NCBI GenBank assembly: GCA_950097015.1
Contig: CATNEN010000015.1
Span: forward strand, 1,426,001 to 1,490,000
Source of the DNA: Macrostomum hystrix
Taxonomy: Eukaryota; Animalia; Platyhelminthes
Direction: 5' to 3'
DNA length: 64,000 bases
Positions 2,016 to 23,140 of this stretch are shown here, piece after piece. The notes below the pieces were generated by a model, which did not search any database, was not told the origin of the DNA, and saw only the letters and a program-made list of their open reading frames with translations. The number at the start of each line of letters is the position of its first letter. Position 1 is the first letter of the stretch. A program made the translations under genes and the position numbers.

Positions 2016-4970
2016 TCAGATCTTCAGCATCAGCCGCAGTTTACGAAGCGATACCCACTTTGAGCCTAAGTTAATCATCATAAACTCGTCACGTGTGTTC
2101 TCCTTCAGAGGAAATAGTCCGTTCGGGTTAAAAGTATGGCACCTGTTATACCACCAGCCACCGCGATCATACAAAAGCGAACAAAAACCGATAGCGTTGT
2201 CGTTGTCCTGGTCCATGGTGGAGAAGCGCATTCCTTTGTGGTACTCCATAGCATCGAATCCGACACTGGACCTGTTCCTCAGCATCTCTCGGTACGTCAT
2301 CTCATATTTGGTGCTGGCGTTTCCCACCTGGAATCCAGCATACTCAGCATGCAGCTCAGTCCCATTCCACAGCTTCATCTCCACTCTGAGTGTGGCTCCG
2401 CCTGCGCTCAGCGAGTGGATGGTGGAGAGACCTGCGGGTTGAGTTTGGCTGGTGATGTGAATACAGGCAAAATGCAAGAGCAGTTGACACGTACTATCTC
2501 TACGCAACTTTGTGCGACAGAACTTGTACTTTTTCACAGACAGCACGACTGGTACGTGTGCTTCTGTCTCTACGTGCTATTTGCTATTCCTGTGTCTTGG
2601 AGCTGAACCAAAAGAATATTTCAGACAGGACAACCATACTCAATTCCAACAGCAAGGCCGCACTACAGGTTATACCACTACTACTCCTCTGACAGACTCC
2701 AATAGATACCAGGGCATTCTGGTTTTCTGGAAATGAGCTTGTCGACTCGCTGGCAAAGCAGTGAGGCGCTAGCTCTGCGTTGGGTCCTGACCCACCAGCT
2801 CTCATCCTCAATACGTCAGTAATCGCCAGATTAATAACAGGCCGGCAAAAACCTCCATCACACGCGACGGAGGGACAACAAAAACTGCTGCCAGTCCAGA
2901 GCGGCAGTCCCGGTCCCATCCACCCGGCTCCGGAAGGTCCTCCTGAACCAAACCTCCTGAAGGACATCCGAGCCCTCACAATGACTTTCACAGGTCATGG
3001 CTGCTATGCCAGGCACTGCTTCCTCCGGGGAGACCTTCGGAACGAGGTGCGTCCATACTGTGTGTTTGAGAATGAGGATGCCCTGTACTTCGTCTGTCAC
3101 TGCCCTTTCTTTATTAGGGAGAGGCCTAACCTCCTTGGTCCGAACCCCTCCATGGATGCCGTTTGCAGATCCGAGAACATCTCGCGGCTCGTCCGGTTCC
3201 CGAGGGCTACCCGACGAGCATCGTTCTTCCCTAATGAGGAACACGCTGCAGGAAAGACCGGCCACGGACCTGCTTTGACTGGCTGCGCACCATTGGCTGA
3301 AGCGGTTTTTCAGGGATCAGTGGAATGTGCGACTGCCGCCTTCCCACTTAGTCTTCGGACCGCCCTACAGCTGAGTCAAGTAAGTGCCTAACTACTAAAT
3401 TGTAGTCCTTGATAGAAAAGGTGTTTCGCAAGCTCACCAATCCAGAAGCTGACGTTGTTTCCAAACCCAGACTCGTACTCCATCCAGTTCCGCTGGAAAC
3501 TGACATCTCCACTGAGTCGTTGTTGAATCGTTATGTATCTGCTTCCGTCAAGCATCAGAAAATCCTTCTTTGAGGAGTTTACTCCGACCCAGTCGGTGTC
3601 AAGCAGCCAATCACATGAAGCCTGGTTGGAACAGCTAAGTGGATTCTTAGTGAGCTCACTTTTGGACGAGAACATGTGCACCTGACTCTCCAGCAGGCAC
3701 TGGTTGGAAATCATCGAAGTTACCTGCCAGCGCACATCCCGCAGCAAGTCAGCTGGTTCGGCACTCAAAGACAATCTGAAGGTGTGAGAACTTGGATTTA
3801 TTGCACGAAAGCACATCAGCACGAGTATCTATAATATGTATAAAACTTAGATTTCCAACCTTAAACTGTCACAGCGATGAAAAGTATCGCAGTAAACTCT
3901 TAGATAAGTTGACTTGAAGTCCTCCAACACCTGCATTTTACCGAGCAAGAAGCGTGAACTCAAAGTCGAGCTCACAATGCTCTGAGCATTCCACAGACGC
4001 ATGAAGGCGATCGAGCGAGGCGATACATCAGCCAGCTGAGCCCTCACAGCCTCCAGGACTGTGTAATCTTGCAGCACTACATCCAGCCTGAGATAAAACT
4101 TCCTACTGCTGTTGTCATAAATTACTGACTCGCTGCTCAAGCTGCTGATGTTGTGGCAGAGAAGAGGCTCCACGAGGAATCCACCTGGCGTGTCCAGCAC
4201 CTGGTGAACTCGAGCCGTACAGGTGGAAGTGCTCACATTGCGAAAGAACTGCAGATGCTGGCAAAACGGCAGGTTCGTGTTCGCGTTGAGGAGCGATGCA
4301 TCTTCCGCTTGCATTACAATGCGATATCTCCTTTGCAGAGAGATCCGCTCTAGGTTTATGGTTGCTATTAGAACCACTCCACCCAGAACTTCCAGAGCAA
4401 AGTTTCTCATTCGAAACCTGAAGAGTCATGGAAATACTGAAACAAATATGTTGGCTCTTCTTACAAGACGAATTCGATAACTTACGCCAACGACAACGCG
4501 GCGCCATTGTCAGTGCACCAGAGTCTCAGGTCACCAACCGGCTCGCCCCAATTCCACACGAATTCAACAGATTTGAAATCAGAATTCTCCCGAGACGAGG
4601 CGCTGATTTCCGTCACGACCGCGAATTTCACCACCTTTGGTGACAGGTTTCTAAGGCGAAAATAAACTTCAGGTAGCAAGGCATCGTCCGTCAGCATCAC
4701 AGGAACACTGACGTACACCTGCTGCCTGATCAGATCGACTCTGGGAGTCAGGCTCTGCAGCTTGTCGGTGACGCACATTGCCGGCTCGATGGCGAAGTGC
4801 GAGCCGTTGCTCTCCACCGAGTGGTGCGCGAACAGCGGGCAGCCGCGCACCCGGAGCTGGGTGACGAAGTCCGAGCGAATGCACTGAGAGACCTGACCGG
4901 CTGCCAGCGAACATAGCAGCAGGGCCAATATGAAGGTGCAGATCAAAAGATTTGCTATTATATTTCTCAT
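2016..4970 (-). CDS. Secreted fibrinogen-related (FReD) protein, copy A, 4 exons, ~598 aa
   Basis: Exons 4970-4486, 4417-3860, 3775-3438 and 2431-2016 (485+558+338+416 = 1797 nt). All introns are GT-AG with matching phases 2,2,1. Hydrophobic leader MRNIIANLLICTFILALLLCSLAAG. Fibrinogen C-domain motifs IQQR..G.VSF.R.W.EY..GFG...FWIG|L, FST.DQDND and GGWWYN.C...NPNG. Confidence 0.88.
2590..3395 (+). mobile_element. Degenerate 3' fragment of an RNase H-containing non-LTR retrotransposon (I/Loa/R1-like) in intron 3 of FReD A
   Basis: Broken RNase H motifs NSNSKAALQ and Q*IPGHSG/GNELVDSLAKQ (~2640-2765), then TGHG and the C-terminal Zn-knuckle-like YCVFENEDALYFVCHCP in ORF 2780-3391. Contains stops and frameshifts; boundaries approximate. 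Confidence 0.75.
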
Positions 4971-7260
4971 TCTTGTCGTGGATTTCAAATCTAATAAAAT
5001 AAAAAGGCTAATTGCTTAAATTTGTTACTCACTAACATACCTTTCTACTGTTTCTGTAATTCACGATTATATATTAAACTTCGAAAGTCACTTGCTGGAA
5101 GCGACAAGTTTATGCACTGCAGATTCATTTTTAGTCATCACGAGATTTATTTGATCCAGCGACAATTTGTTCAAAATTCTGTCCGACTAGATATTTTGGT
5201 TGCGTTTGTATTAATAGAAATATTAACTTTCCACTGAATATCAGCTCGCTGACTAGCATGCTGATTTGTCTTCTATTTACTTCAGCTTTTAATTTTAAGG
5301 TACTTCGTACTTAATTTATCCCTGGCGAAATCAGTTTCTTTGTTTATTTCGGCAAATACTTATTTAGTACTTAGAGAAGACCATGAATAGCTGTCATGTG
5401 ATGCATTCACAGCATGGCTTCAAAGCGAGCCTTTACTGGACATCAGTACATACGCAATGGGCCGCTGAAGTGCTACCAGTGCCAGAGGTAATCTTATTTT
5501 TCGATGTTTTGCTTAGAGATGATGGTAGCGAAGCAGCAAAGGCTGCGCTGCCTCACCTGAGAAATAGTACTGAGAGGAAAGGCACTTGATGAGAATCTGG
5601 TTGATGAGAACCAACGCCACTGTGTTTACCCGCTTTCTCCCCGAGTTCGTTTAGGCCAGAAACCTTGTGGTGCCTAGTGGATATCTAAGACAACGTTTCA
5701 GCAAACATCTTTCCTTTTTGCGGTCCAAATAGACGTGTCACTCGTCTCGATTCTGCTCCGAAAACTGCAAGACAAGACCAAGGTTCGTTAGGTTCGTAAC
5801 ATTCGCCCCTGCTGCATTGAGGCTGACCACAGTCTTATTACTTGCGAAGTTGACCTTCGATGGACCAAATATAAAAAGTCTCCCGCGTCCCCCTATAGGC
5901 GAAATTCTGCTACTCGGGAAGCTTTTGTCTCAAAAGTTCTGAGCGCCGTTTCTGCATGGTCCTGAAACTTCTGCGAGACCTTCACTGCTGCTATTCAAGC
6001 TGCGGCCGACATCCTTCTCAGACACACAGCTAATAGACCAAAGGCCATCTGGGATGCGGATCCTGAAATTGCGCTCGCTTGACGACGAGTCCAAAGTGCC
6101 GCTGCTCGCGATGGTCCCGACAGCGAGCATGCTTTGGCCCTCCACAATGAATTTCAACGCATCTAGGCTGCCACAATCGAGAAGTACACCGAAGAAGCAG
6201 TGTCTGAAATTTAGGTCGCCTCTGACACGTGCAAGCATGCTGCTGCATGGCGTGCTATCAACAAGCAAGGACTACTTAAGTAGATACTACGGCTCGTACT
6301 ATATCACTACTATTGAGTATATAAATCTAATAATTCTTCAGTCGTCCTTGTCCACAAGGTGAGTCGGAGACCTAGACCTAGCGCAGTCGTTAGAGCTTCC
6401 TCTGTCGAAGAAAGAAAAGCCACTCTTGCTGCTCACTACCACAAAGTTCACCACGCTCCGCCTCCTGACACTGGACCTCTTCCGATTCTTGACTTCAATC
6501 CGTCTGCTCCAAGCAGTTTTAATACTGGGTCCATTTCTGCCACTGAAGTCCGTCAAGCATTGGCCACTACACACTCCGATGCCGCAGCTGGTGTTGACGA
6601 AATTCCTCCTCGGGTGCTCAAGCTCCCTGAGTTCTTGCACGTAATAACAAGCTTGCTTAATAAGCACACCATCCTTGGAGGAAACCTAGATGCTCACGCT
6701 CCAGGAAGACCAGGAAGATCTACTACCGAGCAGATCATCACCCTCCGCATCATCATCGAAGCCTTGGCTCGTCATAATGTTTATGACTCGGCTCGTCAAT
6801 CGTCGCTCATCCCAATCGTGTTTATAGACTTCCGGATGGCTTTTGACTCCTCGGTGGCGCGCTCGATTATCTCCTGGTTGCTGGCCCAGTACGGGGTTCC
6901 AGCTGCCCTGGTCACTGCTGTCACTGACCTTTTCATGGACCACGCGTGCCTTCGTCGAGACTCCTGACGGTCGAATATGTCACCTCATAAAGAGTTCTTC
7001 AATATGATATCTTGGCCCCATGTCTTTTTATCTTGTTCGTCGACTACATCCTGAGACGCGCAGGATGATGATGGCTTCATCATGACAACTCGTCGAGATC
7101 CGCGCCACCCTTCCGTCACCCTCGGTGCAATTGCTTTCGCTGACGACATCGCTCTTACCTGCAAGGACCCGTGTGCTGCTCAACGCGCCGTCACCAGACT
7201 TTTCGAAAAAGCCGCTCGAGTTGGCCTGGTGGTCAATGCCCGCAAAACCGAGGTTCTCTA
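4660..7260. repeat. Segmental duplication unit 1 (5' part of FReD exon 1, upstream region, RTE remnant); near-identical to ~13131-16500
   Basis: Identical ORFs recur at an offset of 8471 (5022/13493, 5383/13854, 5930/14401). The sequence matches by eye apart from indels inside the RTE remnant. Confidence 0.95.
5600..7260 (+). mobile_element. RTE-clade-like LINE remnant, copy 1 (end of AP endonuclease, linker, partial RT)
   Basis: Endonuclease end ...GPNRRVTRLD...IEADHSLITCEV. RT motifs GVDEIP, RSTTEQI..LR.IIE, IVFIDFR.AFDS, AFADDIAL and GLVVNARKTEV. Internal deletions, frameshifts, truncated at ~7260. Confidence 0.85.
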
Positions 7261-7665
7261 ACCGAGGGCTATATTGCTTCCCTCGCAAAATTAAAGGTGG
7301 AAATCTTGGAAACTAAATTCCACGCGAGAGTTACGCCAGCGCTAATGATGGCTTGTTCAGTCGGAGGCAAAAATGAGTTCTGCTCGGTATCGACTACGTT
7401 GAGAAGGCTTGCATCCGCACCAATGAGGAATGAGTTATACGATTAAATTCTGCACGTTTACTGCAACCAGTTACCTGTTTTTCATGTTCCACTACAATGT
7501 TTGCTTGTATATCGACTTATTGTAAGTCTATGGTCGAGGTCCGGTTACGAGCACTTTTTCGTTCATAACTTTTGTTTTCATGGTCAGTTTTAAAATGATG
7601 TTTGAGTTTATACGGCTCGTATAAATGTAGTATCCTTGCAAATATCGAACACTGCAGAGGCTCCG

Positions 7666-7990
7666 TGTAGTAGAGTTATAGTTGAAAAGGATGTGCGCCG
7701 ATAGCAAGCACTCGGCAGTAGATTTGCTTGAAGCGTGTATTTGTAGTAGTCTGGGCTAGCAATAATAGGTGGAGGACCCCAAAGGAGTTTTGGTTATGAC
7801 TGCGCGTGGAGTTTCTATTTATAGGCGGGAGCGCGAGTGGGGGAACTTTCCAGAAGGATACCATACATGACACACGCGCACACGAGAGAAGGGTCGAGAA
7901 GATTCTGGAATAAACAAATGAACTCACGCATTATAACAAATGAGGGAAGTTTCTAGAAACTTCCAGAATAATTGCACGAGCGCCATCACA
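7666..7990 (-). repeat. 3' LTR of the Gypsy element (~325 bp)
   Basis: On the minus strand the purine tract GGTGGGGAGG (8000-7991) is followed directly by TGTGATG... and the unit ends ...CTACTACA at 7666 (TG...CA termini). TATA-like TATAAATAG inside. Confidence 0.75.
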
Positions 7991-10070
7991 CCTCCCCACC
8001 AAGCTGTGAGTGCAGCTGACAGAAAAGGAAAGGTCTATAAGTCCATTCGTAGCCGAGGCTTACGCTGTCTCACCGAGCGTCTGGGGTTGTCCGGTCCGAA
8101 AGGTGGTGGCTGAACATGTCCTTGCTCCCGCCGGCCAGGAGACGGAGGCGCCGCCAGCGGTCTGGCCGGTAACACCTGGTGACCGGCCGTTTCGTTTAGC
8201 TGAACCGGCAGCGATCCTGGTTCGCTGTCTTCCATTGACGCGTGTCGTGGTTGCAGCTGGTCGAAGTGCCGCCGCCAGACCGGGCCGTTCGAGACCACCT
8301 TGACGTTAACGCTGCGGCTACCATGCCGCTTGGTGACCACCGCGGGAACCCAGCGGCCTTCCTTCTCGCGGCGTGGTCCGTAGTAGCGCGCATAGACCGC
8401 ATCTCCGACGTTGAACCCTTCTCGGATGCGAGACACCTCTTGACGAGCTCTGGACGCCTCGGCCTGCTTGGCTTGGCGATCCTGGGCGAGATGGGCCGGC
8501 GATGGTAGCAGCGTATCGATCTGCGTCCGGTTCTGCCGGCCGTTGAGGAGTTCACTCGGAGAGTAGCCATTTACTGCCGGAGTCCGTCGGTACTGCATCA
8601 GGAATTGTTGTAGAGCCCTGGCAGGTGGCAGGCTGGATTTCCTCAGGGCCTTCTTTAAGGTCTGAACCAGCTGTTCAGCCGCTCCATTCGTTGCCGGGTG
8701 ATACGGAGCTCCGGTGAGGTGCGCGCTGCGCGCTGGTGTTCGCGACACCATGCTTGGAATTCCTCGGCCATGAATGCCGCTGCGTTGTCCGTGACGACGG
8801 CATGAGGGTAGCCGAAGTGGGCGAAGTCTTCTTCTAGAAGCTCGATCGTAGCCCGAGTTGACATGGATTGCGTCAGGTGTATGCACGGATACTTCGAGTA
8901 GGCGTCCGTAAGCACAAGCCAGTTGGTGCCGAGGAAGTTGACTGCGTGGTCTAGATGTAGGCGACTCCAAGGTTTCTCAGGCATCATCCACGGATGAACG
9001 GCGGCCTTTGGCGGCTGATTTTGGTGCTCGGCGCAGCTGTGGCAGCCGCGGCATAGGTGTTCGACGTCGTCGTCGATGTTCGGCCAATAGACTGCCGATC
9101 GGGCCAGCTGCTTCATCCTCTGCATTCCGAAATGTCCGAGGTGGAGAATTTTCAGCACGTCATTTCGGAGGTTCCGTGGAATTACAAGGCGACAGCCATG
9201 CAGAAGGCATCCGTTGCAGCAGGACAGCGAGTTTTTGACTTTCCGCAGGCGGGCCAGCTCAGCGTCCTCGTCTCGTCCGATTGGCGGCCAACCTTCTCGA
9301 CAGTAGCGCATGGCGGTGGAGATGACTGGGTCCCTCGATGATTCCTTGGCTACGGCTGAGGCGTCAGCCGGCCGGATCTGCAGGCTCAGGACCTTGATCG
9401 CACAGACCATGTCGAAATCGGCTGTGCTCTCCTCCCCGTCGAAGTCTGGGTCGTCTCCGACTGGCAGGCGACTCAGGGCGTCCGCATTTCCGTGACTCTT
9501 CGTCTGGCGGTACTCGATTTCGTAGGTGAAATTGTGGAGCAGGTTCGCCGAACGAGCCAGTCGGTTTGCTGCCATCACAGGTGTCTCCTTTTCGGGCCCA
9601 AGTAGCGAAATCAACGGCTTATGGTCCGTGACCAGGATGAACTTTCGGTTAAACAAGTATTGGAAGAACTTCTTTAAGCCGAAGATGATTGAAAGCGCTT
9701 CCTTCTGAATCTGTGGATAGCGGCGCTGAGCATCCGTCAGAGACTTTGAAGCGTTGGCGATCGGCCGCTCGCTACCATCCGGGTAGCGGTGGAACAGGAC
9801 AGCGCCTATCCCGACGTTTGATGCATCGCAGGAGAGCCCGAGAGGGAGCTCAGGCCTGTAGTGGACAAGTACGTTGTCCGAAGAGAGCTCCTGCTTGATC
9901 CAGTCGAAGGCCCGCTGCTCCGCGTCTCCCCAAATCCATGGTGTGTCCTTCCTGGTGAGGCGGTACAGCGGCTCGGAGATGGTGGCCATGCTCGGTGGCA
10001 AAAACTTTGCGTAGAACTGGACCGAACCGAGGAATGACCGGAGGCTGGACACGTCCTTTGGTGGAGGCAT
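7666..10070 (-). mobile_element. 5'-truncated Ty3/Gypsy LTR retrotransposon (RT connection, RNase H, integrase, PPT, 3' LTR)
   Basis: ORF 8655-10070 has LRSFLG..QFYAKF, RNase H LSCDAS..GIGAVL...EKEAL...TDHKPL, integrase HHCC (H..H...C..C) and core LDHA/TDNA. ORF 8035-8970 continues (PYHPATNGAAEQ) after a frameshift near 8745. The RT-RH-IN order is Gypsy-type. Confidence 0.93.
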
Positions 10071-10411
10071 TACGAGTAAATCACTTTTTGGACCATCAGA
10101 ATAAAAGATATGATAAAAATAAAGACTACCTTTGGGCCATCCCTTGTTGTCTATATGCTGCTCGTAGTTCTAACATAGATTAAAACGCGATTTAAATCGA
10201 AGGTAATTAGTTGCATCTATTACCTTTGTCTTGCGATGTAAGAAACCTGCATGCGAAACCATTGAGCAAACATTTATTAAGCGCTTAAAGTGATCAACTG
10301 AAGTCATCACAACATTCTTTTTTATTTATCATTTAGTGCACAAATATATAATTTGCAATGTTTAATCGGATGGGCTGTAGCAAATCAACAGTGCAATCAA
10401 TTAGTTGTCTA

Positions 10412-10894
10412 AGTGTTCCTGTGATGCTGACGGACGATGCCTTGCTACCTGAAGTTTATTTTCGCCTTAGAAACCTGTCACCAAAGGTGGTGAAATTCGC
10501 GGCCGTGACGGAAATCAGCGCCTCGTCTCGGGAGAATTCTGATTTCAATTCTGTTGAATTCGTGTGGAGACCGGGAGAGTCCATTGGGCACCTGAGACTG
10601 TGGTTCAGCGACTTTGATTCGGCCTTCTTACTAGCGTGAGTTTGCGCTGAAAACATTCGTCATTCGCACATCAGCTCTGGTAAGATTATGACGCTACCTC
10701 GATATTTTTTTTATTTTTAGGTCTCAGACAAGTACTGGTCCCATGAAGGAATTCAATCAAGTGGCACTTTCTGCATCAATCACTCTGGGCAAGAGAGTTA
10801 TGAAAATGAAATACAAGCTGGTGATGCGCAGAGAAGGTGCTCAGGAATCGAGCTTGCGAGCTGACAGCGACACAGACCTGCCATTGTGCCGACA
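10412..10894 (+). pseudogene. Inverted internal fragment of a FReD gene (3' half of exon 1, intron 1, start of exon 2)
   Basis: Encodes SVPVMLTDDALLPEVYFRLRNLSPKVVKF...WRPGESIGHLRLWF, then an intact GTGAG...TTTAG intron, then SQTSTGPMKEFNQ...LPLCR. No start codon and no fibrinogen domain. Confidence 0.9.
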
Positions 10895-11158
10895 TTGATT
10901 GAGTTGTCTTAGATTTGGCATGGCAAATTTACATAAATATATTTTCATTCCTTTATAAAGTTTTGAATCAGAAAGCAGGAACGTGAATAACGAATCGTAT
11001 TCTATTCTATATTTTCTTGACTATATAATGGAGGCTTCAGTATAGTCTCAGTCGATAGATTGATTAAAAATATTAACACGAAAAACCCTTTCAATGCGTC
11101 AAAAAGACAAACACCCTAAGTTCGTTATGCTCAACTCTAAAATAATTTTCATGTCTGT

Positions 11159-13441
11159 TCACATCTGCAGCAGCATTCGCATTTCACGAAGGTTGATCGG
11201 CGTAACATCCTCCCACCAAGTCATGTGGGAATAATCATGATAGTATATATCCTCATAAGGATACAGTCCGTTAGGATTAAAGTACAAGCAATTGTTGAAC
11301 CACCAGCCACCCGACCCACGATTTTGTGAACACGAATAATTTGGAGACCAATCATTGTCGCTGTCCATAGTAGAGAAGCGCATTCCTCTGTGGTTCGCCA
11401 TGGCATCGTATCCGACAGTGGACCTGTCCCACAGCATCTCTCGGTACGTCATCTCATATTTGGTGCTGGCGTTTCCCACCTGGAATCCAGCATACTCAGC
11501 ATGCAGCTCAGTCCCATTCCACAGCTTCATCTCCACTCTGAGTGTGGCACCGCCTGAGCACAGCGAGTGGATGGCGGAGAGACCTGCGGAAGTTTTACGA
11601 AGTTCGTTTGCTACATCACTGCTATAGCTATGCGAATAATCAGTTTTTTGATAAATTATGAAACCAAGATAATATGTACTCTAAGCCAACGCAACTTTCA
11701 TTCAAAGTGCCCTGAAACAAAATGCTGTAGTGCCTTGTGCATTCTGGAAGTTTTGCACGAAAATGGTGACATCAGTTGGTAAATAAAGTCAAACATCATA
11801 ACGTCGATAAGGCATACGCTTATTCTGAAATACAACTACCAGGCGAAGCATTGTATCCCAGTAACTCACCAATCCAAAAGTTCTCTTCGTTTCCGAATCC
11901 AGATTCATAATCTTCCCAACTACGACGAAAATCAACGCTCCCATAAATTCTTTGTTGTATAGCAACAAATATTTTGTTTGCGGCAGTGACAACCAGTCCT
12001 CTGTGCAATATTTTCAGCCGTGCGATGCTAAGAAGCCTCTCGTATGAAGATCTCATGGAACTGCGGAGATAAACATCGTTTTCGTCAGTCTTCCAGGAAG
12101 AAGGAATTTCGTCAGACTTCAGCAGACAAAGATCGGGCAGCGCTGAAGTCAGCTGCCACTTCACGTGACGCCAGAAGTCAGCTGGCACAGCCCGCAAGAT
12201 AAATCTGTTGATACAAAAGTGGAGCATCATTATGAATTAAAAATGCTTTTCTAATGCAAAGTAGACTTTCGTTATAACAATGTAAACAACCACACCTACT
12301 TCATGATTTGGCACTGTTTCAAGGCTCGACAAGACAGCCTTACATGGGCGGATCTCCCATCCGAAGACACATTTAAAGGGCCAATCGAGATTCTAGGACT
12401 AAAGACAGGCCTTATTATGCTCTGAGCACTCCGAAATTTCATAAAGGTGACTGAGCCAGGTGCCAGATCAGCTAGCTGAGATCTGACAGCATCTAGTGTT
12501 GCGCTGTCTTCGAGTATAAACTCCAGCTCAAGATAAAACATTCCGCGGCTGCTGTCATACATGACAGGTTGGCTGCTCAGGCTGATGATGTTGTGACAGA
12601 GCAGCGGCTCGATGAGGAAGTGACTCGGGGCATCACGTCTCTGGTTCACGCGGACCGAGCAGCTGGCGACTGTGACAATTCGAACGAGTTCAAGTTGTCG
12701 GCACAATGGCAGGTCTGTGTCGCTGTCAGCTCGCAAGCTCGATTCCTGAGCACCTTCTCTGCGCATCACCAGCTTGTATTTCATTTTCATAACTCTCTTG
12801 CCCAGAGTGATTGATGCAGAAAGTGCCACTTGATTGAATTCCTTCATGGGACCAGTACTTGTCTGAGACCTAAAAATAAATAAAAAAGATCGAGGTAGCG
12901 TCATAATCTTACCAGAGCTGATGTGCGAATGACGAATGTTTTCAGCGCAAACTCACGCTAGTAAGAAGGCCGAATAAAAGTCGTTGAACCACAGTCTCAG
13001 GTGCCCAATGGACTCTCCCGGTCTCCAAACGAATTCGGCGGATTCGAACACTTGGTTTCCTCCGATGGAGGCTTTGATGTCCGTCACAATTGCGAAGTTG
13101 ACATGCTTCGGTGAAACGCTTCTGAGCCGGAAATAAACTTCAGGTAGCAAAGTATCGTCCGTCAGCATCACAGGAACACTGACGTACACCTGCTGCCTGA
13201 TCAGATCGACTCTGGGAGTCAGGCTCTGCAGCTTGTCGGTGACGCACATTGCCGGCTCGATGGCGAAGTGCGAGCCGTTGCTCTCCACCGAGTGGTGCGC
13301 GAACAGCGGGCAGCCGCGCACCCGGAGCTGGGTGACGAAGTCCGAGCGAATGCACTGAGAGACCTGACCGGCTGCCAGCGAACATAGCAGCAGGGCCAAT
13401 ATGAAGGTGCAGATCAAAAGATTTGCTATTATATTTCTCAT
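11159..13441 (-). CDS. Secreted fibrinogen-related (FReD) protein, copy B, 4 exons, ~604 aa
   Basis: Exons 13441-12957, 12869-12300, 12204-11870 and 11583-11159 (485+570+335+425 = 1815 nt). GT-AG introns in phases 2,2,1; same fibrinogen motifs as copy A. Confidence 0.9.
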
Positions 13442-16400
13442 TCTTGTCGTGGATTTCAAATCTAATAAAATAAAAAGGCTAATTGCTTAAATTTGTTACT
13501 CACTAACATACCTTTCTACTGTTTCTGTAATTCACGATTATATATTAAACTTCGAAAGTCACTTGCTGGAAGCGACAAGTTTATGCACTGCAGATTCATT
13601 TTTAGTCATCACGAGATTTATTTGATCCAGCGACAATTTGTTCAAAATTCTGTCCGACTAGATATTTTGGTTGCGTTTGTATTAATAGAAATATTAACTT
13701 TCCACTGAATATCAGCTCGCTGACTAGCATGCTGATTTGTCTTCTATTTACTTCAGCTTTTAATTTTAAGGTACTTCGTACTTAATTTATCCCTGGCGAA
13801 ATCAGTTTCTTTGTTTATTTCGGCAAATACTTATTTAGTACTTAGAGAAGACCATGAATAGCTGTCATGTGATGCATTCACAGCATGGCTTCAAAGCGAG
13901 CCTTTACTGGACATCAGTACATACGCAATGGGCCGCTGAAGTGCTACCAGTGCCAGAGGTAATCTTATTTTTCGATGTTTTGCTTAGAGATGATGGTAGC
14001 GAAGCAGCAAAGGCTGCGCTGCCTCACCTGAGAAATAGTACTGAGAGGAAAGGCACTTGATGAGAATCTGGTTGATGAGAACCAACGCCACTGTGTTTAC
14101 CCGCTTTCTCCCCGAGTTCGTTTAGGCCAGAAACCTTGTGGTGCCTAGTGGATATCTAAGACAACGTTTCAGCAAACATCTTTCCTTTTTGCGGTCCAAA
14201 TAGACGTGTCACTCGTCTCGATTCTGCTCCGAAAACTGCAAGACAAGACCAAGGTTCGTTAGGTTCGTAACATTCGCCCCTGCTGCATTGAGGCTGACCA
14301 CAGTCTTATTACTTGCGAAGTTGACCTTCGATGGACCAAATATAAAAAGTCTCCCGCGTCCCCCTATAGGCGAAATTCTGCTACTCGGGAAGCTTTTGTC
14401 TCAAAAGTTCTGAGCGCCGTTTCTGCATGGTCCTGAAACTTCTGCGAGACCTTCACTGCTGCTATTCAAGCTGCGGCCGACATCCTTCCCAGACACACAG
14501 CTAATAGACCAAAGGCAATCTGGGATGCGGATCCTGAAATTGCGCTCGCTTGACGACGAGTCCAAAGTGCCGCTGCTCGCGATGGTCCCGACAGCGAGCA
14601 TGCTTTGGCCCTCCACAATGAATTTCAACGCATCTAGGCTGCCACAATCGAGAAGTACACCGAAGAAGCAGTGTCTGAAATTTAGGTCGCCTCTGACACG
14701 TGCAAGCATGCTGCTGCATGGCGTGCTATCAACAAGCAAGGACTACTTAAGTAGATACTACTATACTACTACTATTTAGTAGATAATTCTAATAATTCTT
14801 CAGTCGTCCTTGTCAACAAGCTGACCGGTCGGAGACCTAGACCTAGCGCAGTCGTTAGAGCTTCCTCTGTCGAAGAAAGAAAAGCCACTCTTGCTGCTCA
14901 CTACCACGAAGTTCACCACGCTCCGCCTCCTGACAATGGACCTCTTCCGATTCCGGACTTCAATCCGTCTGCTCCAAGCAGTTTTAATACTGGGTCCATT
15001 TCTTCCACTGAAGTCCGTCAAGCATTGGCCACTACACACTCCGATGCCGCAGCTGGTGTTGACGAAATTCCTCCTCGGGTGCTCAAGCTCCCTGAGTTCT
15101 TGCACGTAATAACAAACTTGCTTAATAAGCACACCATCCTTGGAGGAAACCTAGATGCTCACGCTCCATCTGCTTGGCGAACTTCGAAAATTGCTTCCAT
15201 CCCAAAGTGCCGTCAACTAGCCTTGATAATCAGCGTGGCATTGTTCTCCAGTGTACTCTCTGCTAGCTGCTCAATTCTATCCTTCGAAACCGCTTGCTCA
15301 CAGGCTTGATCATCTGCTCCTTAGCGTTCAAAGACCAGTAAGATCTACTACCGAGCAGATCATCAGCCTCCGCATCACCATCGAAGCCTTGGCTTGTCAT
15401 AATGTTTATGACTCGGCTCGTCAATCGTCACTCGTCCCAATTGTGTTTATAGACTTCCGGAAGGCTTTTGACTCGGTGGCGCTTACTTCACTTAATTACT
15501 TAATTGCAGGGGGGCCTGGGGCACTTGACGCACAAGCGCAGGAACGGCATGCCCCCAAGCCGGCGAACTAGGCGGGAGTCGCCCATTGCGCAATCTAGAC
15601 CCCTGAACACAGGCACCTCATACACAGCCGCAAGCCATGCGGGGAAGGGGGCGGCAGCCGGAGTGCCTCTCACCCCAGGCGCGCACACGCACAGAGCTGA
15701 CCAAACCAGGGGAGGACTTAGATGCCTGAAAAGAGTAGGGACGAGAGGACCAAGCCACGCGCGCAGACGGCTGGTGAAACCTCGCCGCTCAGAGCACGCA
15801 TGGCTGGTGCACACCCGCCCCACCCCCCATTACGACGCCTCACACCCGGCCCAACGCACAAACACAAACACAAACAAGCAGGCATGCTTGCAGGCAGGCA
15901 GGGGTTAAGCTATTTTTAATTAGCTTTGCTTGCACAGAATAAGGTGCATCTCCGCAAGTCACTACTTCGCAAACCTCCAACTATGCCCCGAAATAATCGT
16001 GACTTGGAGGGACAAACGAACCAGCGACCATTGGAAAGTGAGGCAGCGACATTAGCCGCTGACCCACTCACCCCCGACTCGGTGGCGCGCTCGATTATCT
16101 CCTGGTTGCTGGCCCAGTACAGGGTTCCAGCTGCGCTGATCACTGATGTCACTGACCTCTACATGGACCACGCGTGCCTTCGTCGAGACTCCTGATGGGC
16201 CAACGGTCGAATATGTCACCTCATAAAGAGTTCTTCAATATGATACCTGGGCCCCATGTCTTTTTATCTTGTTCGTCGACTACATCCTGCGACGCGCAGG
16301 ATGATGATGGCTTCATCATGACAAATCGTCGAGGTCCGCGCCACCCTTCCGTCACCCTCGGTGCAATTGCTTTCGCTGACGACATCGCTCTTACCTGCAA

Positions 16401-16500
16401 GGACCCGTGTGCTGCTCAACGCGCCGTCACCAGACTTTTCGAAAAAGCCGCCCGATTTGGCCTGGTGGTCAATGCCCGCAAAACCGAGGTTCTTTACGTG
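13131..16500. repeat. Segmental duplication unit 2 (counterpart of 4660-7260)
   Basis: Near-identical to unit 1, but retains RT sequence deleted from unit 1 and carries the SINE insertion. Confidence 0.9.
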
Positions 16501-16885
16501 GGAACCGAAAACAGTCCATCGCTGTCTCTCCCGAGTAGTGAGAAATCATGGCCTGCGGCGACTTTCGCTACCTCAGTTCCCTCGTCATGACCCCCGAGAC
16601 CATCATCGCCGATCGAAGGACGCAAGCTGCCATCAAGCTGCGCCTGGTTTTCTCCTCTGCTTCCCCCCGACAAATAAAAGATGAAGATTTTTCATGCTGC
16701 CCTCGAAACCATCCTGCTCTACGGCCTGGAGGCGGTCCCCGTGACTCAATCGAGGGAAAGAAGTATCGACGCCTCACACATAGCCCTTCCTCTCTATGCT
16801 ATCGGTATCCGCTACCCAGAGACCATCTCCAACCGTGAACTGAGGAGACGGACGGGCGCTCTTCCGGTCAGCACGCTTGTCCGTC
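14070..16885 (+). mobile_element. RTE-clade-like LINE remnant, copy 2 (longer, interrupted by a SINE)
   Basis: Same motifs as copy 1, plus AWRTSKI..IPK and the RT C-terminus KIFHAALETILLYGLEA...ISNRELRRRTG (ORF 16681-16974). Degenerate. Confidence 0.85.
15483..16075 (-). mobile_element. tRNA-headed SINE-like insertion (~593 bp) with a 13-bp TSD
   Basis: GACTCGGTGGCGC flanks it at 15470-15482 and 16076-16088, and the insert is absent from RTE copy 1. The minus-strand 5' end GGGGGTGAGTGGGTCAGCGG...GGTTCG has A-box/B-box-like motifs; the 3' tail is a short repeat (AATTAAGTAATTAAGTGAAGTAA). Confidence 0.75.
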
Positions 16886-17581
16886 GCAGGCGGTACATTA
16901 ACAGCACCGTTTCAGAATTCGATTGTTTGAGTTTAGTAGATTTATCATGCATTTTGGCTAAGTGCGTGTGTTAGATGCTTAAATATATTAAACTCTATTA
17001 AATGCTAGTAAATTCAAACAAGAAGAAGCATGTGCTTAATTTGTCTGAAGCGTGTGTTGTGCAAATACTGACTATTTTCTGTTTAACTTAGATCTTGACT
17101 GTCAATTTTCAAAATTAAAGAATATAGACTACCGAAGCCTCACCAGCAAGGATCATGTGAAGCTGAGTGCTCGCAGGATTCCACGCCTGCTAATACCGGA
17201 CCTGAAAGATCAGCGGCAGCGCGTGTGCCGTGAGACAATCTGGAGCGTGTCAGGCAACATGGTGGATGGGAAATGTTTCGACAAATTGTTGTCATTGGTG
17301 ACGAGACGTGTGTGCCACATTTTTATCACATTTTTATCAAATTTTTGAGCTAGGAAAGTGCATGCAATGCCGAGGGCTTTATTGCTTCCCTCGCAAAATT
17401 AGGAGCGTGAATAACGAATCGTATTCTATTCGAGATTTTCTTGACTATATAATGGAGGCTTCAGTCTCAGTCGATAGCTTGGATTACAAATAAAAACACG
17501 CAGAACCCTTTCAATGCGTCAAAAAGACAAACACCCTAAGTTCGCCATGCACAACTCTAAAATAGTTTTCATGTCTGTTCA

Positions 17582-18149
17582 GTTTTACTCCCGATTCGCC
17601 GAATCCCGGTTCGCCGATTCCCGAATCGCCGATTCCTGATTCGCCGAATCCCGATTCCCGATTCGCCGAATTCCTGATTCGCCGATTCCTAATTCGCCGA
17701 ATTCCCTATTCGTCTAAAAAATTGCTAAGAACATTTTGCTGAGCTAACGTACCTCATTAAAGTTTTACTTTCGGCTCTACAAGGATGTCCAGCAAGTTTT
17801 GCTTTTTCCGAAGTACGTGTGATGTTCTTCATTTGCTCACTCAATCTACGTTCCAGAAAGTTAATAAAGTTTAGAAGCAAGTTTACAAGTTAATGAATCA
17901 AGAAAGTGCATTTCATTTAAGTTAGTTTTTTAATTAATTTCAATTCAAAAGAAATAAAGTTCCAATGTTTGACCAACACTCAAAAATGGCAATGGTTATG
18001 TGGTTTAATTTTAATTTATGATAAAGTAAGATGTATTAAATCAGGATTCGGCGAATCAGGATTCGAGTCAGGAATTTCGGAAAGGCCAGGAATTTCGGCA
18101 AATCGGGAATTCGGCGAGTCAGGAATTTCGGCGAATCGGGAGTAAACCA
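17582..18149. mobile_element. Non-autonomous foldback/MITE-like DNA element with an 8-bp TSD
   Basis: TCTGTTCA at 17574-17581 and 18150-18157; copy B has a single TCTGTTCA at the homologous site (~11154-11161). Termini TTTACTCCCGATTCGCCGAA are inverted, each arm is built of GATTCGCCGAA-type subrepeats, and the core is AT-rich and non-coding. Confidence 0.88.
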
Positions 18150-18154
18150 TCTGT

Positions 18155-21100
18155 TCACATCTGCAGCAGCATTCGCATTTCACGAAGGTTAATCGGCGTA
18201 ACATCTTCCCACCAAGTCATGTAAGAATAATCCTCATAGCGTTTATCCTCATAAGGATACAGTCCGTTAGGATTAAAGTACAAGCAACCGTTGAACCACC
18301 AGCCACCCGACCCACGATTTTGTGAACACGAATAATTTAGAGTCCTATCATTGTCGCTGTCCATAGTAGAGAAGCGCATTCCTCTGTGGCTCGCCATGGC
18401 ATCGTATCTGACAGTGGACCTGTCCCACAGCATCTCTCGGTACGTCATCTCATATTTGGTGCTGGCGTTTCCCACCTGGAATCCAGCATACTCAGCATGC
18501 AGCTCAGTCCCATTCCACAGCTTCATCTCCACTCTGAGTGTGGCACCGCCTGCGCTCAGCGAGTGGATGGCGGAGAGACCTGCGGAAGTTTTACGAAGTT
18601 CGTTTGCTACATCTCTGCTATACTACGGGTGTCATAAGTAATGTCACTGCGGTTGTTGTGCGGGAACCCAAAGCAATTATCATCCAAATATATTATATTC
18701 TTCTGAAAGTACATTTATTGAGAAGTTGCCACCACACCTGAGCAGCAATTTTAATGTCTATGGCCAAAACTGTCGCAAGAATTTGTTAATCAGATTTAGC
18801 AAGCGCAACGCGATGAAATCTTATTTTTGCAACGAGCAAAACTCAACATGAATCACGACAAGACGCACATCCAGTTCTACGCTTTCATTCGCTTCAAGCT
18901 TGGAAAATCTGCACTTGAAGTAGAGGAGGATCTCCGGAACACACTGCCAGACAACTGCCCAACTCGCAGGACAATTTACAGGTGGTTTCAGAACTTTACT
19001 GATCCTGGGTTCTAATTGGGAGATGCCGCCAGATCTGGACGACCATGTTCAACCAGGACAATAGAGAACATCGAAGTCATCAGCGACCTGGTCAAAGAAG
19101 ATCCGCGGCAGTCTGTCAGGGAGCTAGCGGACTGCTTGGAGATTGATTTCAAGACAGTCCATCGCATCTTGACAGAGGATCTCCATCTCCGAAACGTCTG
19201 CTCGGTCTGGGTGCCCCATGACCTCACTGCGGACCAACGTCAGGCCCGTGTGAACTGCGCCAATCAGATCCGCAAGGTGTTTAGCAGCCGGGGCTTGGAT
19301 GACATCCTAAACTGCCTGGTTGTTGAGGATGAGACCTGGCTCCACCTGGATGGCAAAAGCAGCAAGGCAGACAATCGCTGCTGGCTGGGAGCTCGGGACT
19401 CCAGGCTGACTGTGACCAGGAGGTCCATCTCAGACAAGAAGACGATGCTGCTGGTGGCATTCACGCCAAACAAACGAGTCTCCATCTGTACAACTCCGCC
19501 AAACACCAAGGTCGATGGCCAGTACTTCATCGACTTTGTCCGACACACTGGGAACCTCTGGCGCACGCTCCGGTCAAACCCGATTCACCTGAACGAAGTT
19601 CTGTGGCAGATGGACAACGCACGGCCCCACACCTGTCAGGCTGTTTCGGATTTTCTGGCTGGACGGCGAGTAAATCTGCTCTGGCAGAGTCCCTACAGCC
19701 CAGACTTCAACTTGTGCGACAGTTTTCTCTTTAAATGGCTGAAGGCAGACTTTTCCCAGAGAAGTTTCGCAAACCATGATGAGGTCAAAGAAGACGCGTT
19801 GCACTGGTTCCGACAGCTGGAGGAAAAACACCTACAGGCTGAGGTAGAGAAGCTGTACGAGCACTGTCAGAGGGTGATTGATATTGGGGGACACTATGTT
19901 GTTGATTGATACAGTTTCGTTCATCTGCGATTGTTAGTTGGTCTGTTTTACCCTCAGTGACAATACTTATGACACACCCGAAGTAGCTATGCGAATAATC
20001 AGTTTTTTGATAAATTGTGAAACCAAGATAATATGTACTCTAAGCCAACGCAACTTTCATTCAAAGTGCCCTGAAACAAAATGCTGTAGTGCCTTGTGCA
20101 TTCTGGAAGAATGTTTTGCAGGAAAATGCTGACATCAGTTGTTAAATAAAGTCAAACATCATAATGTCGATAAGGCATACGCTTATTCTGAAATACAACT
20201 ACCAGGCGAAGCATTGTATCCCAGTAACTCACCAATCCAAAAGTTCTCTTCGTTTCCGAATCCAGATTCATAATCTTCCCAACTACGACGAAAATCAACG
20301 CTCCTATTAATTCTTTGTTGTATAGCAACAAATATTTTGTTTGCGGCAGTGACAACCAGTCCTCTGTGCAATATTTTCAGCCGTGCGATGCTAAGAAGCC
20401 TGTCGCATGAAGATCTCATGGAACAGCTGAGATAAACATCGTTTTCGTCAGTCTTCCAGGAAGAAGAAATTTCGTCAGACTTCAGCAGACAAAGATCGGG
20501 CAGCACTGAAGTCAGCTGCCACTTCACGTGACGCCAGAAGTCAGCTGGCACAGCCCGCAAGATAAATCTGTTGATACACAAGTGGAGCATCATTATGAAT
20601 TAAAAATGCTTTTCTAATGCAAAGTAGACTTTCGTTATAACAATGTAAACAACCACACCTACTTTATGATTTGGCACTGTTTCAAGGCTCGACAAGACAG
20701 CCTTACATGGGCGGATCTCCCATCCGAAGACACATTTAAAGGGCCAATCGAGATTCTAGGACTAAAGACAGGTCTTATTATGCTCTGAGCACTCCGAAAT
20801 TTCATAAAGGTGACTGAGCCAGGTGCCAGATCAGCTAGCTGAGATCTGACAGCATCTAGTGTTGCGCTGTCTTCCAGTATAAACTCCAGCTCAAGATAAA
20901 ACATTCCGCGGCTGCTGTCATACATGACAGGTTGGCTGCTCAGGCTGATGATGTTGTGGCAGAGCAGCAGCTCGATGAGGAAGTGACTCGGGGCATCACG
21001 TCTCTGGTTCACGCGGACCGAGCAACTGGCGACTGTGACAATTCGAACGAGTTCAAGTTGTCGGCACAATGGCAGGTTTGTGTCGCTGTCAGCACTTAAG

Positions 21101-21807
21101 CTCGATTCCTGAGCACCTTCTCTGCGCATCACCAGCTTGTATTTCATTTTCATAACTCTCTTGCGCAGAGTGATTGATGCAGAAAGTGCCACTTGATTGA
21201 ATGCCTTCATGGGACCAGTACTTGTCTGAGACCTGAAAATAAATAAAAAATATCGAGGTAGCGTCATAATCTTACCAGAGCTGATGTGCGAATGACCAAT
21301 GTTTTCAGCGCAAACTCACGCTAGTAAGAAGGCCGAATAAAAGTCGTTGAACCACAGTCTCAGGTGTCCAATGGACTCTCCCGTTCTCCAAACGAATTCG
21401 GCGGATTCGAACACTTGGTTTCCTCCGATGGAGGCTTTGATGTCCGTCACAATTGCGAAGTTGACATGCTTCGGTGAAACGCTTCTGAGCCGGAAATAAA
21501 CTTCAGGTAGCAAAGTATCGTCCGTCAGCATCACAGGAACACTGACGTACACCTGCTGCCTGATCAGATCGACTCTGGGAGTCAGGCTCTGCAGCTTGTC
21601 GGTGACGCACATTGCCGGCTCGATGGCGAAGTGCGAGCCGTTGCTCTCCACCGAGTGGTGCGCGAACAGCGGGCAGCCGCGCACCCGGAGCTGGGTGACG
21701 AAGTCCGAGCGAATGCACTGAGAGACCTGACCGGCTGCCAGCGAGCAGAACAGCAGGGCCGGCACGTAGCTGAGAATGAGAGTGACTGCCTGAAGTCGCA
21801 TTGTCAT
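18155..21807 (-). CDS. Secreted fibrinogen-related (FReD) protein, copy C, 4 exons, ~605 aa; mariner in intron 3
   Basis: Exons 21807-21320, 21232-20663, 20567-20233 and 18579-18155, all in frame. Body close to copy B (offset 8363 for exons 2-3), but with a different leader MTMRLQAVTLILSYVPALLFCSLAAG. Confidence 0.9.
18623..19983 (+). mobile_element. Full-length mariner (DD34D) transposon with one in-frame stop in the transposase
   Basis: TA TSD at 18621-22 and 19984-85; the empty site GCTATAGCTA is in copy B at 11621-30. TIRs of ~28 bp, CT(A/T)CGGGTGT(GT)CATAAGTA(A/T)TGTCACTG. Transposase 18848-19909 with WVPH, DETW, DNARPH-34 aa-D and YSPD; TAA at 19013-15. Confidence 0.96.
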
Positions 21808-22183
21808 ATCTTTGAGTCATTCGAAACTTTGTGGCATTTTGCGTTCAAAATGTAACTTTAATATATCTACTTTGCGGCATTAGTCACCAGCTGTTTATTT
21901 TCAGCAGGATGTGGTTCGTATGGCTAAGACACGGCTCGTTTTCGACATTTTCGACAGTTTTCGACATAAGAATAATTCAAATTGACAAGAATTTTCTTGT
22001 ATACAAATGCGAAGGTGCCTATGAAGCAAATGATAGCATGAAACAAAGCTTTGCATCGATTGCTTATAAATTGTGACAAGCAAGACGTTCGTTGTGTACA
22101 CAGAATCGGACCAAGGCTTATCGTTTCTGGAAATAGTTTAGCAAGCTTGTTCATCAATTGTCAATTTCATATGGAGTGATGCT

Positions 22184-22410
22184 GTGGTGGAGTGGGTGCT
22201 GTGGTGGAGTGGGTGCTGTGGTGGAGTGGGTGCTGTGGTGGAGTGGGTGCTGTGGTGGAGTGGGTGCAGTGGTGGAGTGGGTGCTGTGGTTGAGTGGGTG
22301 CTGTGGTTGAGTGGGTGCTGTGTTGGAGTGGGTGCTGTGGTGGAGTGGGTGCTGTGGTGGAGTGGGTGCTGTGGTGGAGTGGGTGCTGTGGTGGAGTGGG
22401 TGCTGTGGTG
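22184..22410. repeat. 17-bp minisatellite (GTGGTGGAGTGGGTGCT)n, ~13 copies
   Basis: Periodicity directly visible. Confidence 0.95.
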
Positions 22411-22750
22411 AAGTGCTGTTTGTCACCACACTGACATTGGGTGAACACTAAAGCTATCATGGCTTTGTCTGTTTTAAGGACTAGTTCGAGTTTTGTCTTC
22501 AGTAACTCAGGAGCTAATTACAATGTGAGAATACTTGTGGCAGTTCCTCATTTATTCGCTAAATTTGGCCTGGAGTTTTTATATGTTTGGAATGCCAAGA
22601 TTTCCTGCATCGCTGGATCAAATAATTGCTACTGCGTTAAGACATTTGACGACTACATTTTAAGCTTTTGTTCGTCTTATTGTGTAGATCCCACTGAGAA
22701 ATATTATGATTTTTCCTCTTCCGAGCTATACAATACCTTGGCTAGCTAGC

Positions 22751-23140
22751 TAGCTGAGTCTAGCTGAGTACAGCTGAGTCTAGCTGAGTCTAGCTGAGTC
22801 TAGCTGAGTCTAGCTGAGTCTAGCTGAGTCTAGCTCAGTCTAGCTGAGTCTAGCTGAGTCTAGCTGAGTCTAGCTGAGTCTAGCTGAGTCTAGCTCAGTC
22901 TAGCTGAGTCTAGCTGAGTCTAGCTGAGTCTAGCTCAGTCTAGCTGAGTCTAGCTGAGTCTAGCTGAGTCTAGCTGAGTCTAGCTGAGTCTAGCTGAGTC
23001 TAGCTGAGTCTAGCTCAGTCTAGCTGAGTCTAGCTGAGTCTAGCTGAGTCTAGCTGAGTCTAGCTGAGTCTAGCTGAGTCTAGCTCAGTCTAGCTGAGTC
23101 TAGCTCAGTCTAGCTCAGTCTAGCTCAGTCTAGCTGAGTT
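22751..23140. repeat. 10-bp tandem repeat (TAGCT[G/C]AGTC)n, ~39 copies
   Basis: Periodicity directly visible; preceded by (GCTA)n. Confidence 0.97.

Follow-up and report, generated by a model that had tools for sequence, protein, structure and literature searches.

We consider it probable that the fibrinogen-related genes clustered in this stretch of the Macrostomum hystrix genome (64,000 nucleotides, hereafter the window) are members of a family that is specific to Macrostomum and numbers about 25 genes, in which a crossover made one member, gene B, and gene conversion keeps constant blocks alike between old variable blocks. According to this explanation, genes A and C are old paralogues with saturated synonymous sites across most of their length, and unequal crossing-over between them inside the common exon-1 block duplicated about 8.4 kb, giving rise to B. 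A later conversion then left A and B almost identical across about 1.5 kb, and a second exchange with another breakpoint produced fragment F. Recurrent family-wide conversion accounts for three short near-identical blocks (5' exon 1, the exon 2 core and 5' exon 4), and the intervening blocks, those for the fibrinogen ligand-binding loops included, are ancient, highly diverged and partly reassorted. The process is already known; the gene family is previously undescribed.

A, B and C are three intact four-exon genes on the minus strand, occupying 2016-21807 of the window (Table 1). Their introns are canonical GT-AG with phases 2, 2 and 1, and their coding lengths are multiples of three; open reading frames, splice sites and phases confirm what the first-pass annotation had described as three intact-looking four-exon genes with a common architecture. 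Each product consists, in order, of a signal peptide, two orphan domains of about 130 aa each, a linker that varies across the family and a fibrinogen C domain. In gene A, exon 1 encodes the signal peptide and the first orphan domain, exon 2 the second orphan domain, and exons 3 and 4 a linker and the fibrinogen C domain. Exons were used singly in searches, by reference, and the sole two-domain query was the natural uninterrupted frame of one paralogue (L012:775-1974).

Table 1. Features of the fibrinogen-related gene cluster, in window positions.
Feature	Position	Strand	Details
Gene A	2016-4970	-	exons 4486-4970, 3860-4417, 3438-3775, 2016-2431; 598 aa; from ORFs, splice sites, phases
Gene B	11159-13441	-	exons 12957-13441, 12300-12869, 11870-12204, 11159-11583; 604 aa
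Gene C	18155-21807	-	exons 21320-21807, 20663-21232, 20233-20567, 18155-18579; 605 aa
Fragment F	10412-10894	+	inverted piece: 3' half of exon 1, intron 1, 5' part of exon 2
Constant block, exon 4 start	A 2265-2431, B 11417-11583, C 18413-18579	-	89-96% nucleotide identity across cluster members
Tract identical in A, B and C	A 4683-4910, B 13154-13381, C 21517-21744	-	228 nt
A/B near-identical tract	4683-6249 (= 13154-14720)		2 substitutions in ~1.57 kb
Two colinear copies of ~8.4 kb unit	4514-21760 (4514-13397 and 12985-21760)		ordered BLAST blocks, per-block substitution counts
Non-LTR reverse-transcriptase remnant	6359-7288	+	upstream of A; part of duplicated unit
Truncated LTR-retrotransposon pol (RNase H and integrase)	8035-10075	-	A-B spacer only
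Tc1/mariner-like element	18623-19983	+	in C intron 3; open 297-aa transposase frame

The N-terminus of these proteins is a tandem pair of one orphan domain (hhalign 98.5%), which is, as modelled, a Cys-containing alpha/beta repeat. Two AlphaFold models of the domain are mixed alpha/beta with medium confidence (pLDDT 67), and nothing credible resembled their fold in Foldseek PDB, ESM Atlas or VIA-align: no Foldseek match reached E <= 0.001, and VIA-align peaked at a Z of 5.4, with the ferredoxin-like and beta-sandwich rows within noise. A protein-atlas feature search yielded sub-threshold phage rows only. Pfam identified no Ig family in exons 1-2, setting these proteins apart from snail-type FREPs, and the earlier claim of a non-Ig N-terminus is consistent with both the Pfam and the fold searches, which reveal no Ig signal, the orphan tandem pair standing in its place. 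No Gly-X-Y run, the mark of a ficolin-type collagen-like stalk, is present in the exon 1-3 translations.

Pfam Fibrinogen_C (PF00147) is divided between exons 3 and 4, with exon 3 contributing profile positions 39-81 and exon 4 scoring 95.1 bits in A and 76.1 bits in B (cut-off 22), which makes it a FReD. The PDB matches of gene A are fibrinogen gamma and ficolin-2 (E 3e-16), and when A exon 4 is aligned with fibrinogen gamma 1m1j_C (E 3e-16) it shows the calcium-site Asp motif and the P-subdomain Cys pair, the residue-by-residue check covering gene A only. Gene A thus has in common with ficolins, tachylectin-5, FIBCD1 and fibrinogen gamma a calcium-binding Asp motif and a Cys pair flanking the pocket, as well as the His that follows the second Cys; this residue is Leu in B and C and one of several others in M. 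lignano. Unlike these known proteins, A, B and C harbor neither a collagen-like nor a coiled-coil stalk. Among paralogues, the position following the second Cys is hypervariable, as are the adjacent loops, and variable residues are located in the fibrinogen binding loops. The constant blocks code for conserved protein cores. The proteins are putative secreted, calcium-dependent, lectin-like binders, whose binding specificities may differ via the variable fibrinogen loops. Positive selection on the fibrinogen domain was considered for B and C, which differ in the fibrinogen exons by 23 non-synonymous and 3 synonymous changes, and was rejected as suggestive only, the dN/dS above 1 not being significant (p 0.17).

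The three genes are patchworks of one another. Both pairwise relations proposed at first reading are borne out: A and B share the upstream region, leader and 5' exon 1, with zero differences from 4683 to about 5850, but not exons 2 and 3, where protein identity is 42% and 37%; B and C share the gene body, at about 98% identity across 1.8 kb, but not the leader and upstream regions, which are unrelated. No alignment is possible between the introns of A and those of B. Gene B is a chimera in which an A-type promoter, leader and 5' exon 1 are joined to a C-type body, being A-type upstream and C-type downstream of the tract over which A, B and C are identical, with the junction lying within that tract. 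The probability of finding no difference in this tract is about 0.01 at the B-C rate (0.006 for 265 nt). The two copies of the duplicated unit overlap in B exon 1 and differ by at least four transposon-sized insertions. Both intergenic spacers are colinear too. Unequal crossing-over leaves two colinear units that overlap in a chimeric gene, whose junction falls within homology that already existed. All of this is seen here, and since the units are colinear and B switches type at the shared tract, one such event explains B.

The crossover does not suffice for the whole arrangement, which also calls for a later conversion between A and B and for the second breakpoint, that of F. Farther upstream, the duplicated unit diverges by 3-4%, and B and C differ by about 2%. 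Differences within the unit number 2 in 1540 nt versus 35 in 1020 nt, and the near-identical A/B tract departs from the flanking and B-C divergence with Fisher p of 2e-12 and 1e-7. A tract so nearly identical, inside a unit otherwise diverged to this extent, argues for recent gene conversion between A and B. The first ~640 bp upstream occur genome-wide only at A and B, and on this ground the idea that the upstream identity reflects two insertions of one young element was rejected.

Fragment F combines an A-type segment (10412-10566, 147/149) with a B-type segment (10567-10894, about 99%, nearer B than C), and it changes type about 155 nt to the 3' side of the B breakpoint. The chimerism previously ascribed to this fragment stands, and its description is corrected in that the fragment is inverted and lies on the plus strand. 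A transposon-captured origin of F was rejected; its flanks are single-copy and F does not sit inside a multi-copy element. Mobile elements are present around the genes. The LTR-retrotransposon pol of the A-B spacer has at least 25 further copies elsewhere in the genome, the non-LTR remnant upstream of A has a counterpart upstream of B (15025-16590), and the Tc1/mariner-like element of C intron 3, with a DDE_3 transposase match at 19016-19909, is missing from B.

The joins between A, B and C, like the tract of full identity, were read from the assembly alone, and it is conceivable that B or the identical A/B tract is an artefact of tandem-joined haplotypes, of a repeat-induced misjoin or of short-read over-polishing. 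Separately assembled haplotypes did need purging, followed by Illumina polishing (PMC10468722); in that case the two units would be alleles about 2-4% apart and a tract of 1.2-1.5 kb with zero or two differences a possible over-polishing product. Nevertheless, the inbreeding coefficient of the line is about 0.998 and long reads went into its assembly (PMC10468722), the transposon-sized insertions separate the two units, and long reads would not be misled by a repeat as short as 228 nt. Furthermore, F is an independent record of A/B exchange, and the same mosaics are found at other loci and in a separate M. lignano assembly. We therefore regard an artefact as very unlikely.

The mosaic extends well beyond the three genes. 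The family comprises about 25-30 loci, most of them on contig 15, and in about 25 paralogues blocks almost devoid of synonymous differences alternate with saturated blocks. Between A and B, synonymous difference is 0.00 over the signal peptide and the 5' block of exon 1, 0.03 over the 5' block of exon 4 and 0.54-0.96 in every other block; these contrasts are far beyond chance (Fisher p 3e-11, 8e-8 and 2e-12 by block; overall 1e-7 to 1e-12). Other family pairs have the same alternation, the exon-4 constant block differs by 0.00-0.20 at synonymous sites among all cluster members, and two otherwise near-identical paralogues diverge mainly in the variable part of exon 4. A single consistent tree along the length of the copies, which would have spoken against the mosaic, is rejected by AU tests: data from exons 1-3 reject the exon-4 trees (delta lnL 240-430), and the constant exon-4 block rejects the exon 1-3 trees (p <= 0.004), the variable exon-4 tree being weakened by several paralogues in which the 3' part of exon 4 is incomplete. 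A split of {A,B,C} from the rest is recovered in exons 1-3, and the conflict for these three genes thus concerns mainly branch lengths and exon 4, not every segment.

The protein search run here found the family only in Macrostomum, the sole homologues being fibrinogen-C proteins from M. lignano, about 520-650 aa long. These automatically annotated "Fibrinogen C-terminal domain-containing proteins" (BOX15_Mlig...), for which, as for flatworm fibrinogen-domain genes generally, we found no paper, resemble A, B and C in architecture and length at 52-65% identity. Their loci are tandem as in M. hystrix, with the same constant and variable blocks and the same mosaic; one copy adjoins an ISWI-type gene. 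The constant blocks exist in species-specific versions, with synonymous difference of 0-0.1 among the M. hystrix paralogues and 0.25-0.4 between the two species, while the variable blocks differ by 0.55-0.95 within M. hystrix. We read the family pattern as concerted evolution by gene conversion, with old variable blocks reassorted.

The same alternation could in principle arise with no family-wide recombination, if selection at the nucleotide or RNA level held the constant blocks while the variable blocks came under runaway positive selection after recent duplications. Consistent with this notion, the constant blocks encode conserved cores, and the exon-4 block ends at the intron boundary in A, in B and in their left neighbour, beginning exactly at the splice acceptor, which also fits selection on the exon. 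However, synonymous sites of the variable blocks are saturated and the A and B introns unalignable. In addition, a contig 1 paralogue has synonymous differences of 0.6-1.0 uniformly, conserved-protein blocks included, and across this paralogue and M. lignano the same protein blocks have synonymous differences of 0.25-0.6. The homogenised sequence, moreover, enters intron 3 by about 100 nt in 8 paralogues and covers 1.3 kb of DNA upstream of A and B. Selection without recombination is the least likely of the explanations considered, and concerted evolution by conversion is retained.

Snail FREPs and chicken antibody genes are proposed precedents for recognition repertoires built by conversion, and the cluster had been put forward at first reading as a recombination-diversified recognition system. 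The mosaics in that proposal hold, but a diversification system is not required, the local pattern needing only one unequal crossover and one or two conversions. In its full form, constant blocks would be selected as homology anchors, and germline or somatic conversion would shuffle variable cassettes into a recognition repertoire. Constant and variable blocks do alternate with breakpoints at block edges, new combinations of variable blocks are seen in B, F and the near-identical paralogue pair differing mainly in exon 4, and the variable residues fall in binding loops. In Biomphalaria glabrata, FREP variants have been attributed to point mutation together with gene conversion (PMC7588048). 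Yet all events seen are ordinary germline events, neither a pseudogene donor array nor a recombination signal accompanies them, and such a pattern may originate passively in any tandem family if conversion is purged from sites under diversifying selection. The detectable conversion mostly homogenises constant blocks and does not create variety, the variable blocks being old. A dedicated system of this kind is thus unlikely, and a recognition role and purposeful diversification are both putative.

Like the FREPs of Biomphalaria glabrata (PMC7588048), the proteins encoded by A, B and C are secreted (here by prediction), multigene products, in which the N-terminal part is one domain or a tandem of two and an interceding region separates it from the fibrinogen domain at the C-terminus. 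FREP N-terminal domains belong to the IgSF, in contrast to the orphan alpha/beta Cys-containing repeat; moreover, the host here is a free-living flatworm, and the exchange seen in it is germline. The family might still be a convergent counterpart of snail FREPs. On that reading, secreted fibrinogen lectins with a pair of orphan domains at the N-terminus would form a repertoire, and the constant blocks would act as conversion anchors by which variable cassettes of ancient origin are reassorted, in the germline and possibly in somatic cells too, under selection to diversify recognition in immunity or otherwise; we hold this to be rather improbable.

MHC and other receptor clusters are tandem families with concerted evolution and mosaics of constant and variable blocks. 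The present family is like them in its short converted tracts, alternating silent-site divergence and unequal crossover chimeras, and in converted tracts that are closer within than between species. It differs in being a new family in a new phylum, with unusually sharp blocks in which silent differences of 0-0.1 lie beside those of more than 0.6 inside single exons. It offers a clean, dated case of evolution in a tandem lectin-like family, in which one unequal crossover gave a gene body the promoter and leader of another gene, and conversions of short extent keep cores constant as binding loops remain diverse. It also introduces a Macrostomum-restricted, undescribed protein family with an orphan repeated domain, whose overall layout, though lacking Ig domains, parallels that of snail FREPs. 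RNAi and transgenesis are available in Macrostomum, which serves as a laboratory model, and its innate recognition molecules are, to our knowledge, essentially unknown; the family provides a concrete candidate set for them.

The genes A, B and C, three fibrinogen-related genes of 598, 604 and 605 aa, are each encoded by four exons with GT-AG introns of phases 2, 2 and 1, and their coding frames contain no internal stops. A self-comparison of the window, which spans contig 15 1,426,001-1,490,000, reveals that 4514-13397 is colinear with 12985-21760. Large insertions set the two copies apart. The first holds an inverted gene fragment, F (10412-10894, plus strand), and an LTR-retrotransposon pol remnant (8035-10075); the second holds a Tc1/mariner-like element together with others. 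The Tc1/mariner-like element is missing from B, which is elsewhere 96-98% identical to C, indicating a recent insertion. Two short tandem-repeat arrays lie directly upstream of C (22154-22460 and 22742-23142). Elsewhere in the window, open frames on both strands of long minisatellite arrays (29971-31016, 49352-50741, 51667-52374, 54852-57413 and 60417-62028) are spurious, and some of these arrays sit inside or next to a ZIP zinc-transporter gene (Pfam Zip, 48455-49297); 32488-35569 (plus strand) holds exon-like frames with a tubulin-type N-terminal motif, the first piece having no Pfam match.

Genes, transposon and duplicated blocks (window positions)
Feature	Position	Strand	Detail
Gene A	exons 4486-4970, 3860-4417, 3438-3775, 2016-2431	minus	coding 1797 nt
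Gene B	exons 12957-13441, 12300-12869, 11870-12204, 11159-11583	minus	coding 1815 nt
Gene C	exons 21320-21807, 20663-21232, 20233-20567, 18155-18579	minus	coding 1818 nt
Tc1/mariner-like element	18623-19983, intron 3 of C	plus	DDE_3 open 297-aa transposase frame, 19016-19909
Matching block 1	4514-6703 with 12985-15168		self-comparison
Matching block 2	6850-7260 with 16078-16496		self-comparison
Matching block 3	10977-11161 with 17401-17581		self-comparison
Matching block 4	11154-11626 with 18150-18622		self-comparison
Matching block 5	11625-13397 with 19984-21760		self-comparison

The overlap of the colinear copies falls in exon 1 of B, and inside it lies a 228-nt tract that is identical in A (4683-4910), B (13154-13381) and C (21517-21744). 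Going 5' from the tract, B has the sequence of A, and C shows no relation; going 3', B has the sequence of C, and A stands at ~60-70% identity. The first-pass annotation had described the genes as patchworks of each other, and the switch of B from A-type to C-type across this tract bears that out. The gene order is C, the chimera (B) and A, with both spacers duplicated; unequal crossing-over of an A-type with a C-type gene would predict both this duplicated layout and the switch in B. The joins and the identical tract were read from the assembly of Macrostomum hystrix line SR1 (inbreeding coefficient ~0.998), which was built from long reads, purged of haplotigs and then polished with Illumina reads (PMC10468722); an artefact of assembly or polishing behind B or behind the identical tract is considered very improbable.

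A and B/C are paralogues of long standing. Protein identity between A and B is 83%, 42%, 37% and 61% in exons 1 to 4, and over exons 2-4 A is no closer to B than to other family members. As a proportion, synonymous differences between the two run at 0.00 in the leader and 5' exon-1 block and at 0.56 over the remainder of exon 1; exon 2 gives 0.61-0.69 and exon 3 gives 0.64-0.96, and exon 4 has 0.03 over its first 165 nt and 0.54 beyond, confirming the earlier impression that the two are alike in the leader and 5' exon 1 and far apart in exons 2-3.

One crossover is insufficient for the local mosaic, and three observations demand more. First, A and B differ by 2 substitutions across 4683-6249, against 35 in ~1020 nt further upstream in the duplicated unit and a B-C divergence of ~2% (p 2e-12 and 1e-7), indicating a later A/B conversion. 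Second, A equals C over the 228-nt tract, yet the adjoining silent sites are saturated. Third, F, whose flanks are single-copy, is A-type at 147/149 positions up to 10566 and then ~99% B-type, with a breakpoint that falls ~155 nt to the 3' side of the one in B; it represents a second A/B exchange or else the fossil of an earlier B state. The chimeric nature originally assigned to this fourth piece between A and B stands, with the correction that it is inverted.

Protein searches and fold models were run by reference on each exon separately. All three genes open with a hydrophobic leader. A Pfam profile search assigned exons 1 and 2 to no family, and the two are homologous to one another (hhalign probability 98.5%, E 3.6e-15, 129 columns), indicating that the N-terminus is a tandem pair of one cysteine-containing domain of ~130 aa. 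AlphaFold models of this domain are mixed alpha/beta at medium confidence (pLDDT 67), and Foldseek, ESM Atlas and VIA-align returned no credible relative for them (top Z 5.4), in agreement with the non-Ig N-terminus proposed at first. A fibrinogen C domain follows in exons 3-4 (Pfam, up to 95 bits); against the PDB, exon 4 of A matches fibrinogen gamma and beta, ficolin-2, tenascin and FIBCD1, with the calcium motif and the cysteine pair aligned.

A genome search found ~25-30 family loci, the majority on contig 15 (0.94-1.45 Mb) and the remainder on contigs 1, 3, 24, 34, 37 and 38. A fourth four-exon member lies left of A, 0.5-4.2 kb beyond the window's left edge (contig 15 1,421,842-1,425,521), with matched exons that are stop-free (loci L019, L029, L033, L034, L045), and beyond it lie exon-1-like pieces carrying stop codons, indicating that the local sub-cluster extends past the window. 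In the paralogue at locus L012:775-1974 (minus strand) and its near-twins at contig 15 1,204,422 and 1,321,289, signal peptide, domain 1, linker and domain 2 form a single uninterrupted frame of ~400 aa, intron 1 being either lost or open in frame. Three members in tight tandem on contig 37 (3,693,613-3,702,742, ~3.5 kb spacing; L024-L026, L059-L061) share 26-47% identity with B exon by exon and constitute a separate, more distant sub-cluster. Outside M. hystrix, the protein search found homologues only in M. lignano, with the same layout and genes that are also in tandem; one of these has an ISWI-type chromatin remodeller gene 5 kb away (NIVC01001802.1; L067:1-4843, 10001-13065).

Among cluster members, silent difference is low in three constant blocks, 5' exon 1, the exon 2 core and 5' exon 4 (0.00-0.20 for every pair in the last), and reaches 0.55-1.0 in the variable blocks between them. 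A contig 1 paralogue retains the same protein blocks at a uniform silent difference of 0.6-1.0, indicating that low silent divergence is not inherent to the codons of the constant blocks. Identity of the exon-4 block extends ~100 nt into intron 3 in eight paralogues and ends at the splice acceptor in A, B and the left neighbour. In AU tests, exon 1-3 data rejected the exon-4 trees (delta lnL 240-430, exon 4 being incomplete for several paralogues) and the constant exon-4 block rejected the exon 1-3 trees (p <= 0.004), so the copies, as anticipated in the first-pass annotation, follow no single tree along their length; conflict among exons 1-3 was mild, and the {A,B,C} grouping was recovered. 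Silent difference in the constant blocks is 0.25-0.4 versus M. lignano (four loci) and 0-0.1 within M. hystrix, where variable blocks differ by 0.55-0.95; in the M. lignano paralogues the constant blocks come in versions of their own, with the same constant/variable alternation. Together, the silent-site, tree and cross-species patterns indicate concerted evolution of the constant blocks by gene conversion, in which variable blocks of greater age are kept and at times recombined.

In snail FREPs a linker connects one or two N-terminal domains to a fibrinogen domain, and variants are generated via gene conversion (PMC7588048). The layout of A, B and C parallels theirs, but the N-terminal domains here are non-Ig and the events seen are all germline; no publication on these flatworm genes turned up in a literature search. 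In exon 4, the variable parts are the loops round the fibrinogen binding pocket, and the position following the second pocket cysteine is occupied by His in A and by Leu in both B and C; in M. lignano it varies. Changes between B and C number 23 non-synonymous and 3 synonymous in the fibrinogen exons; exons 1-2 have 7 of each (p 0.018), and the fibrinogen-exon ratio is not significantly above neutral (p 0.17). The predicted role of these proteins is most likely that of secreted, calcium-dependent lectin-like binders with copy-specific ligands.
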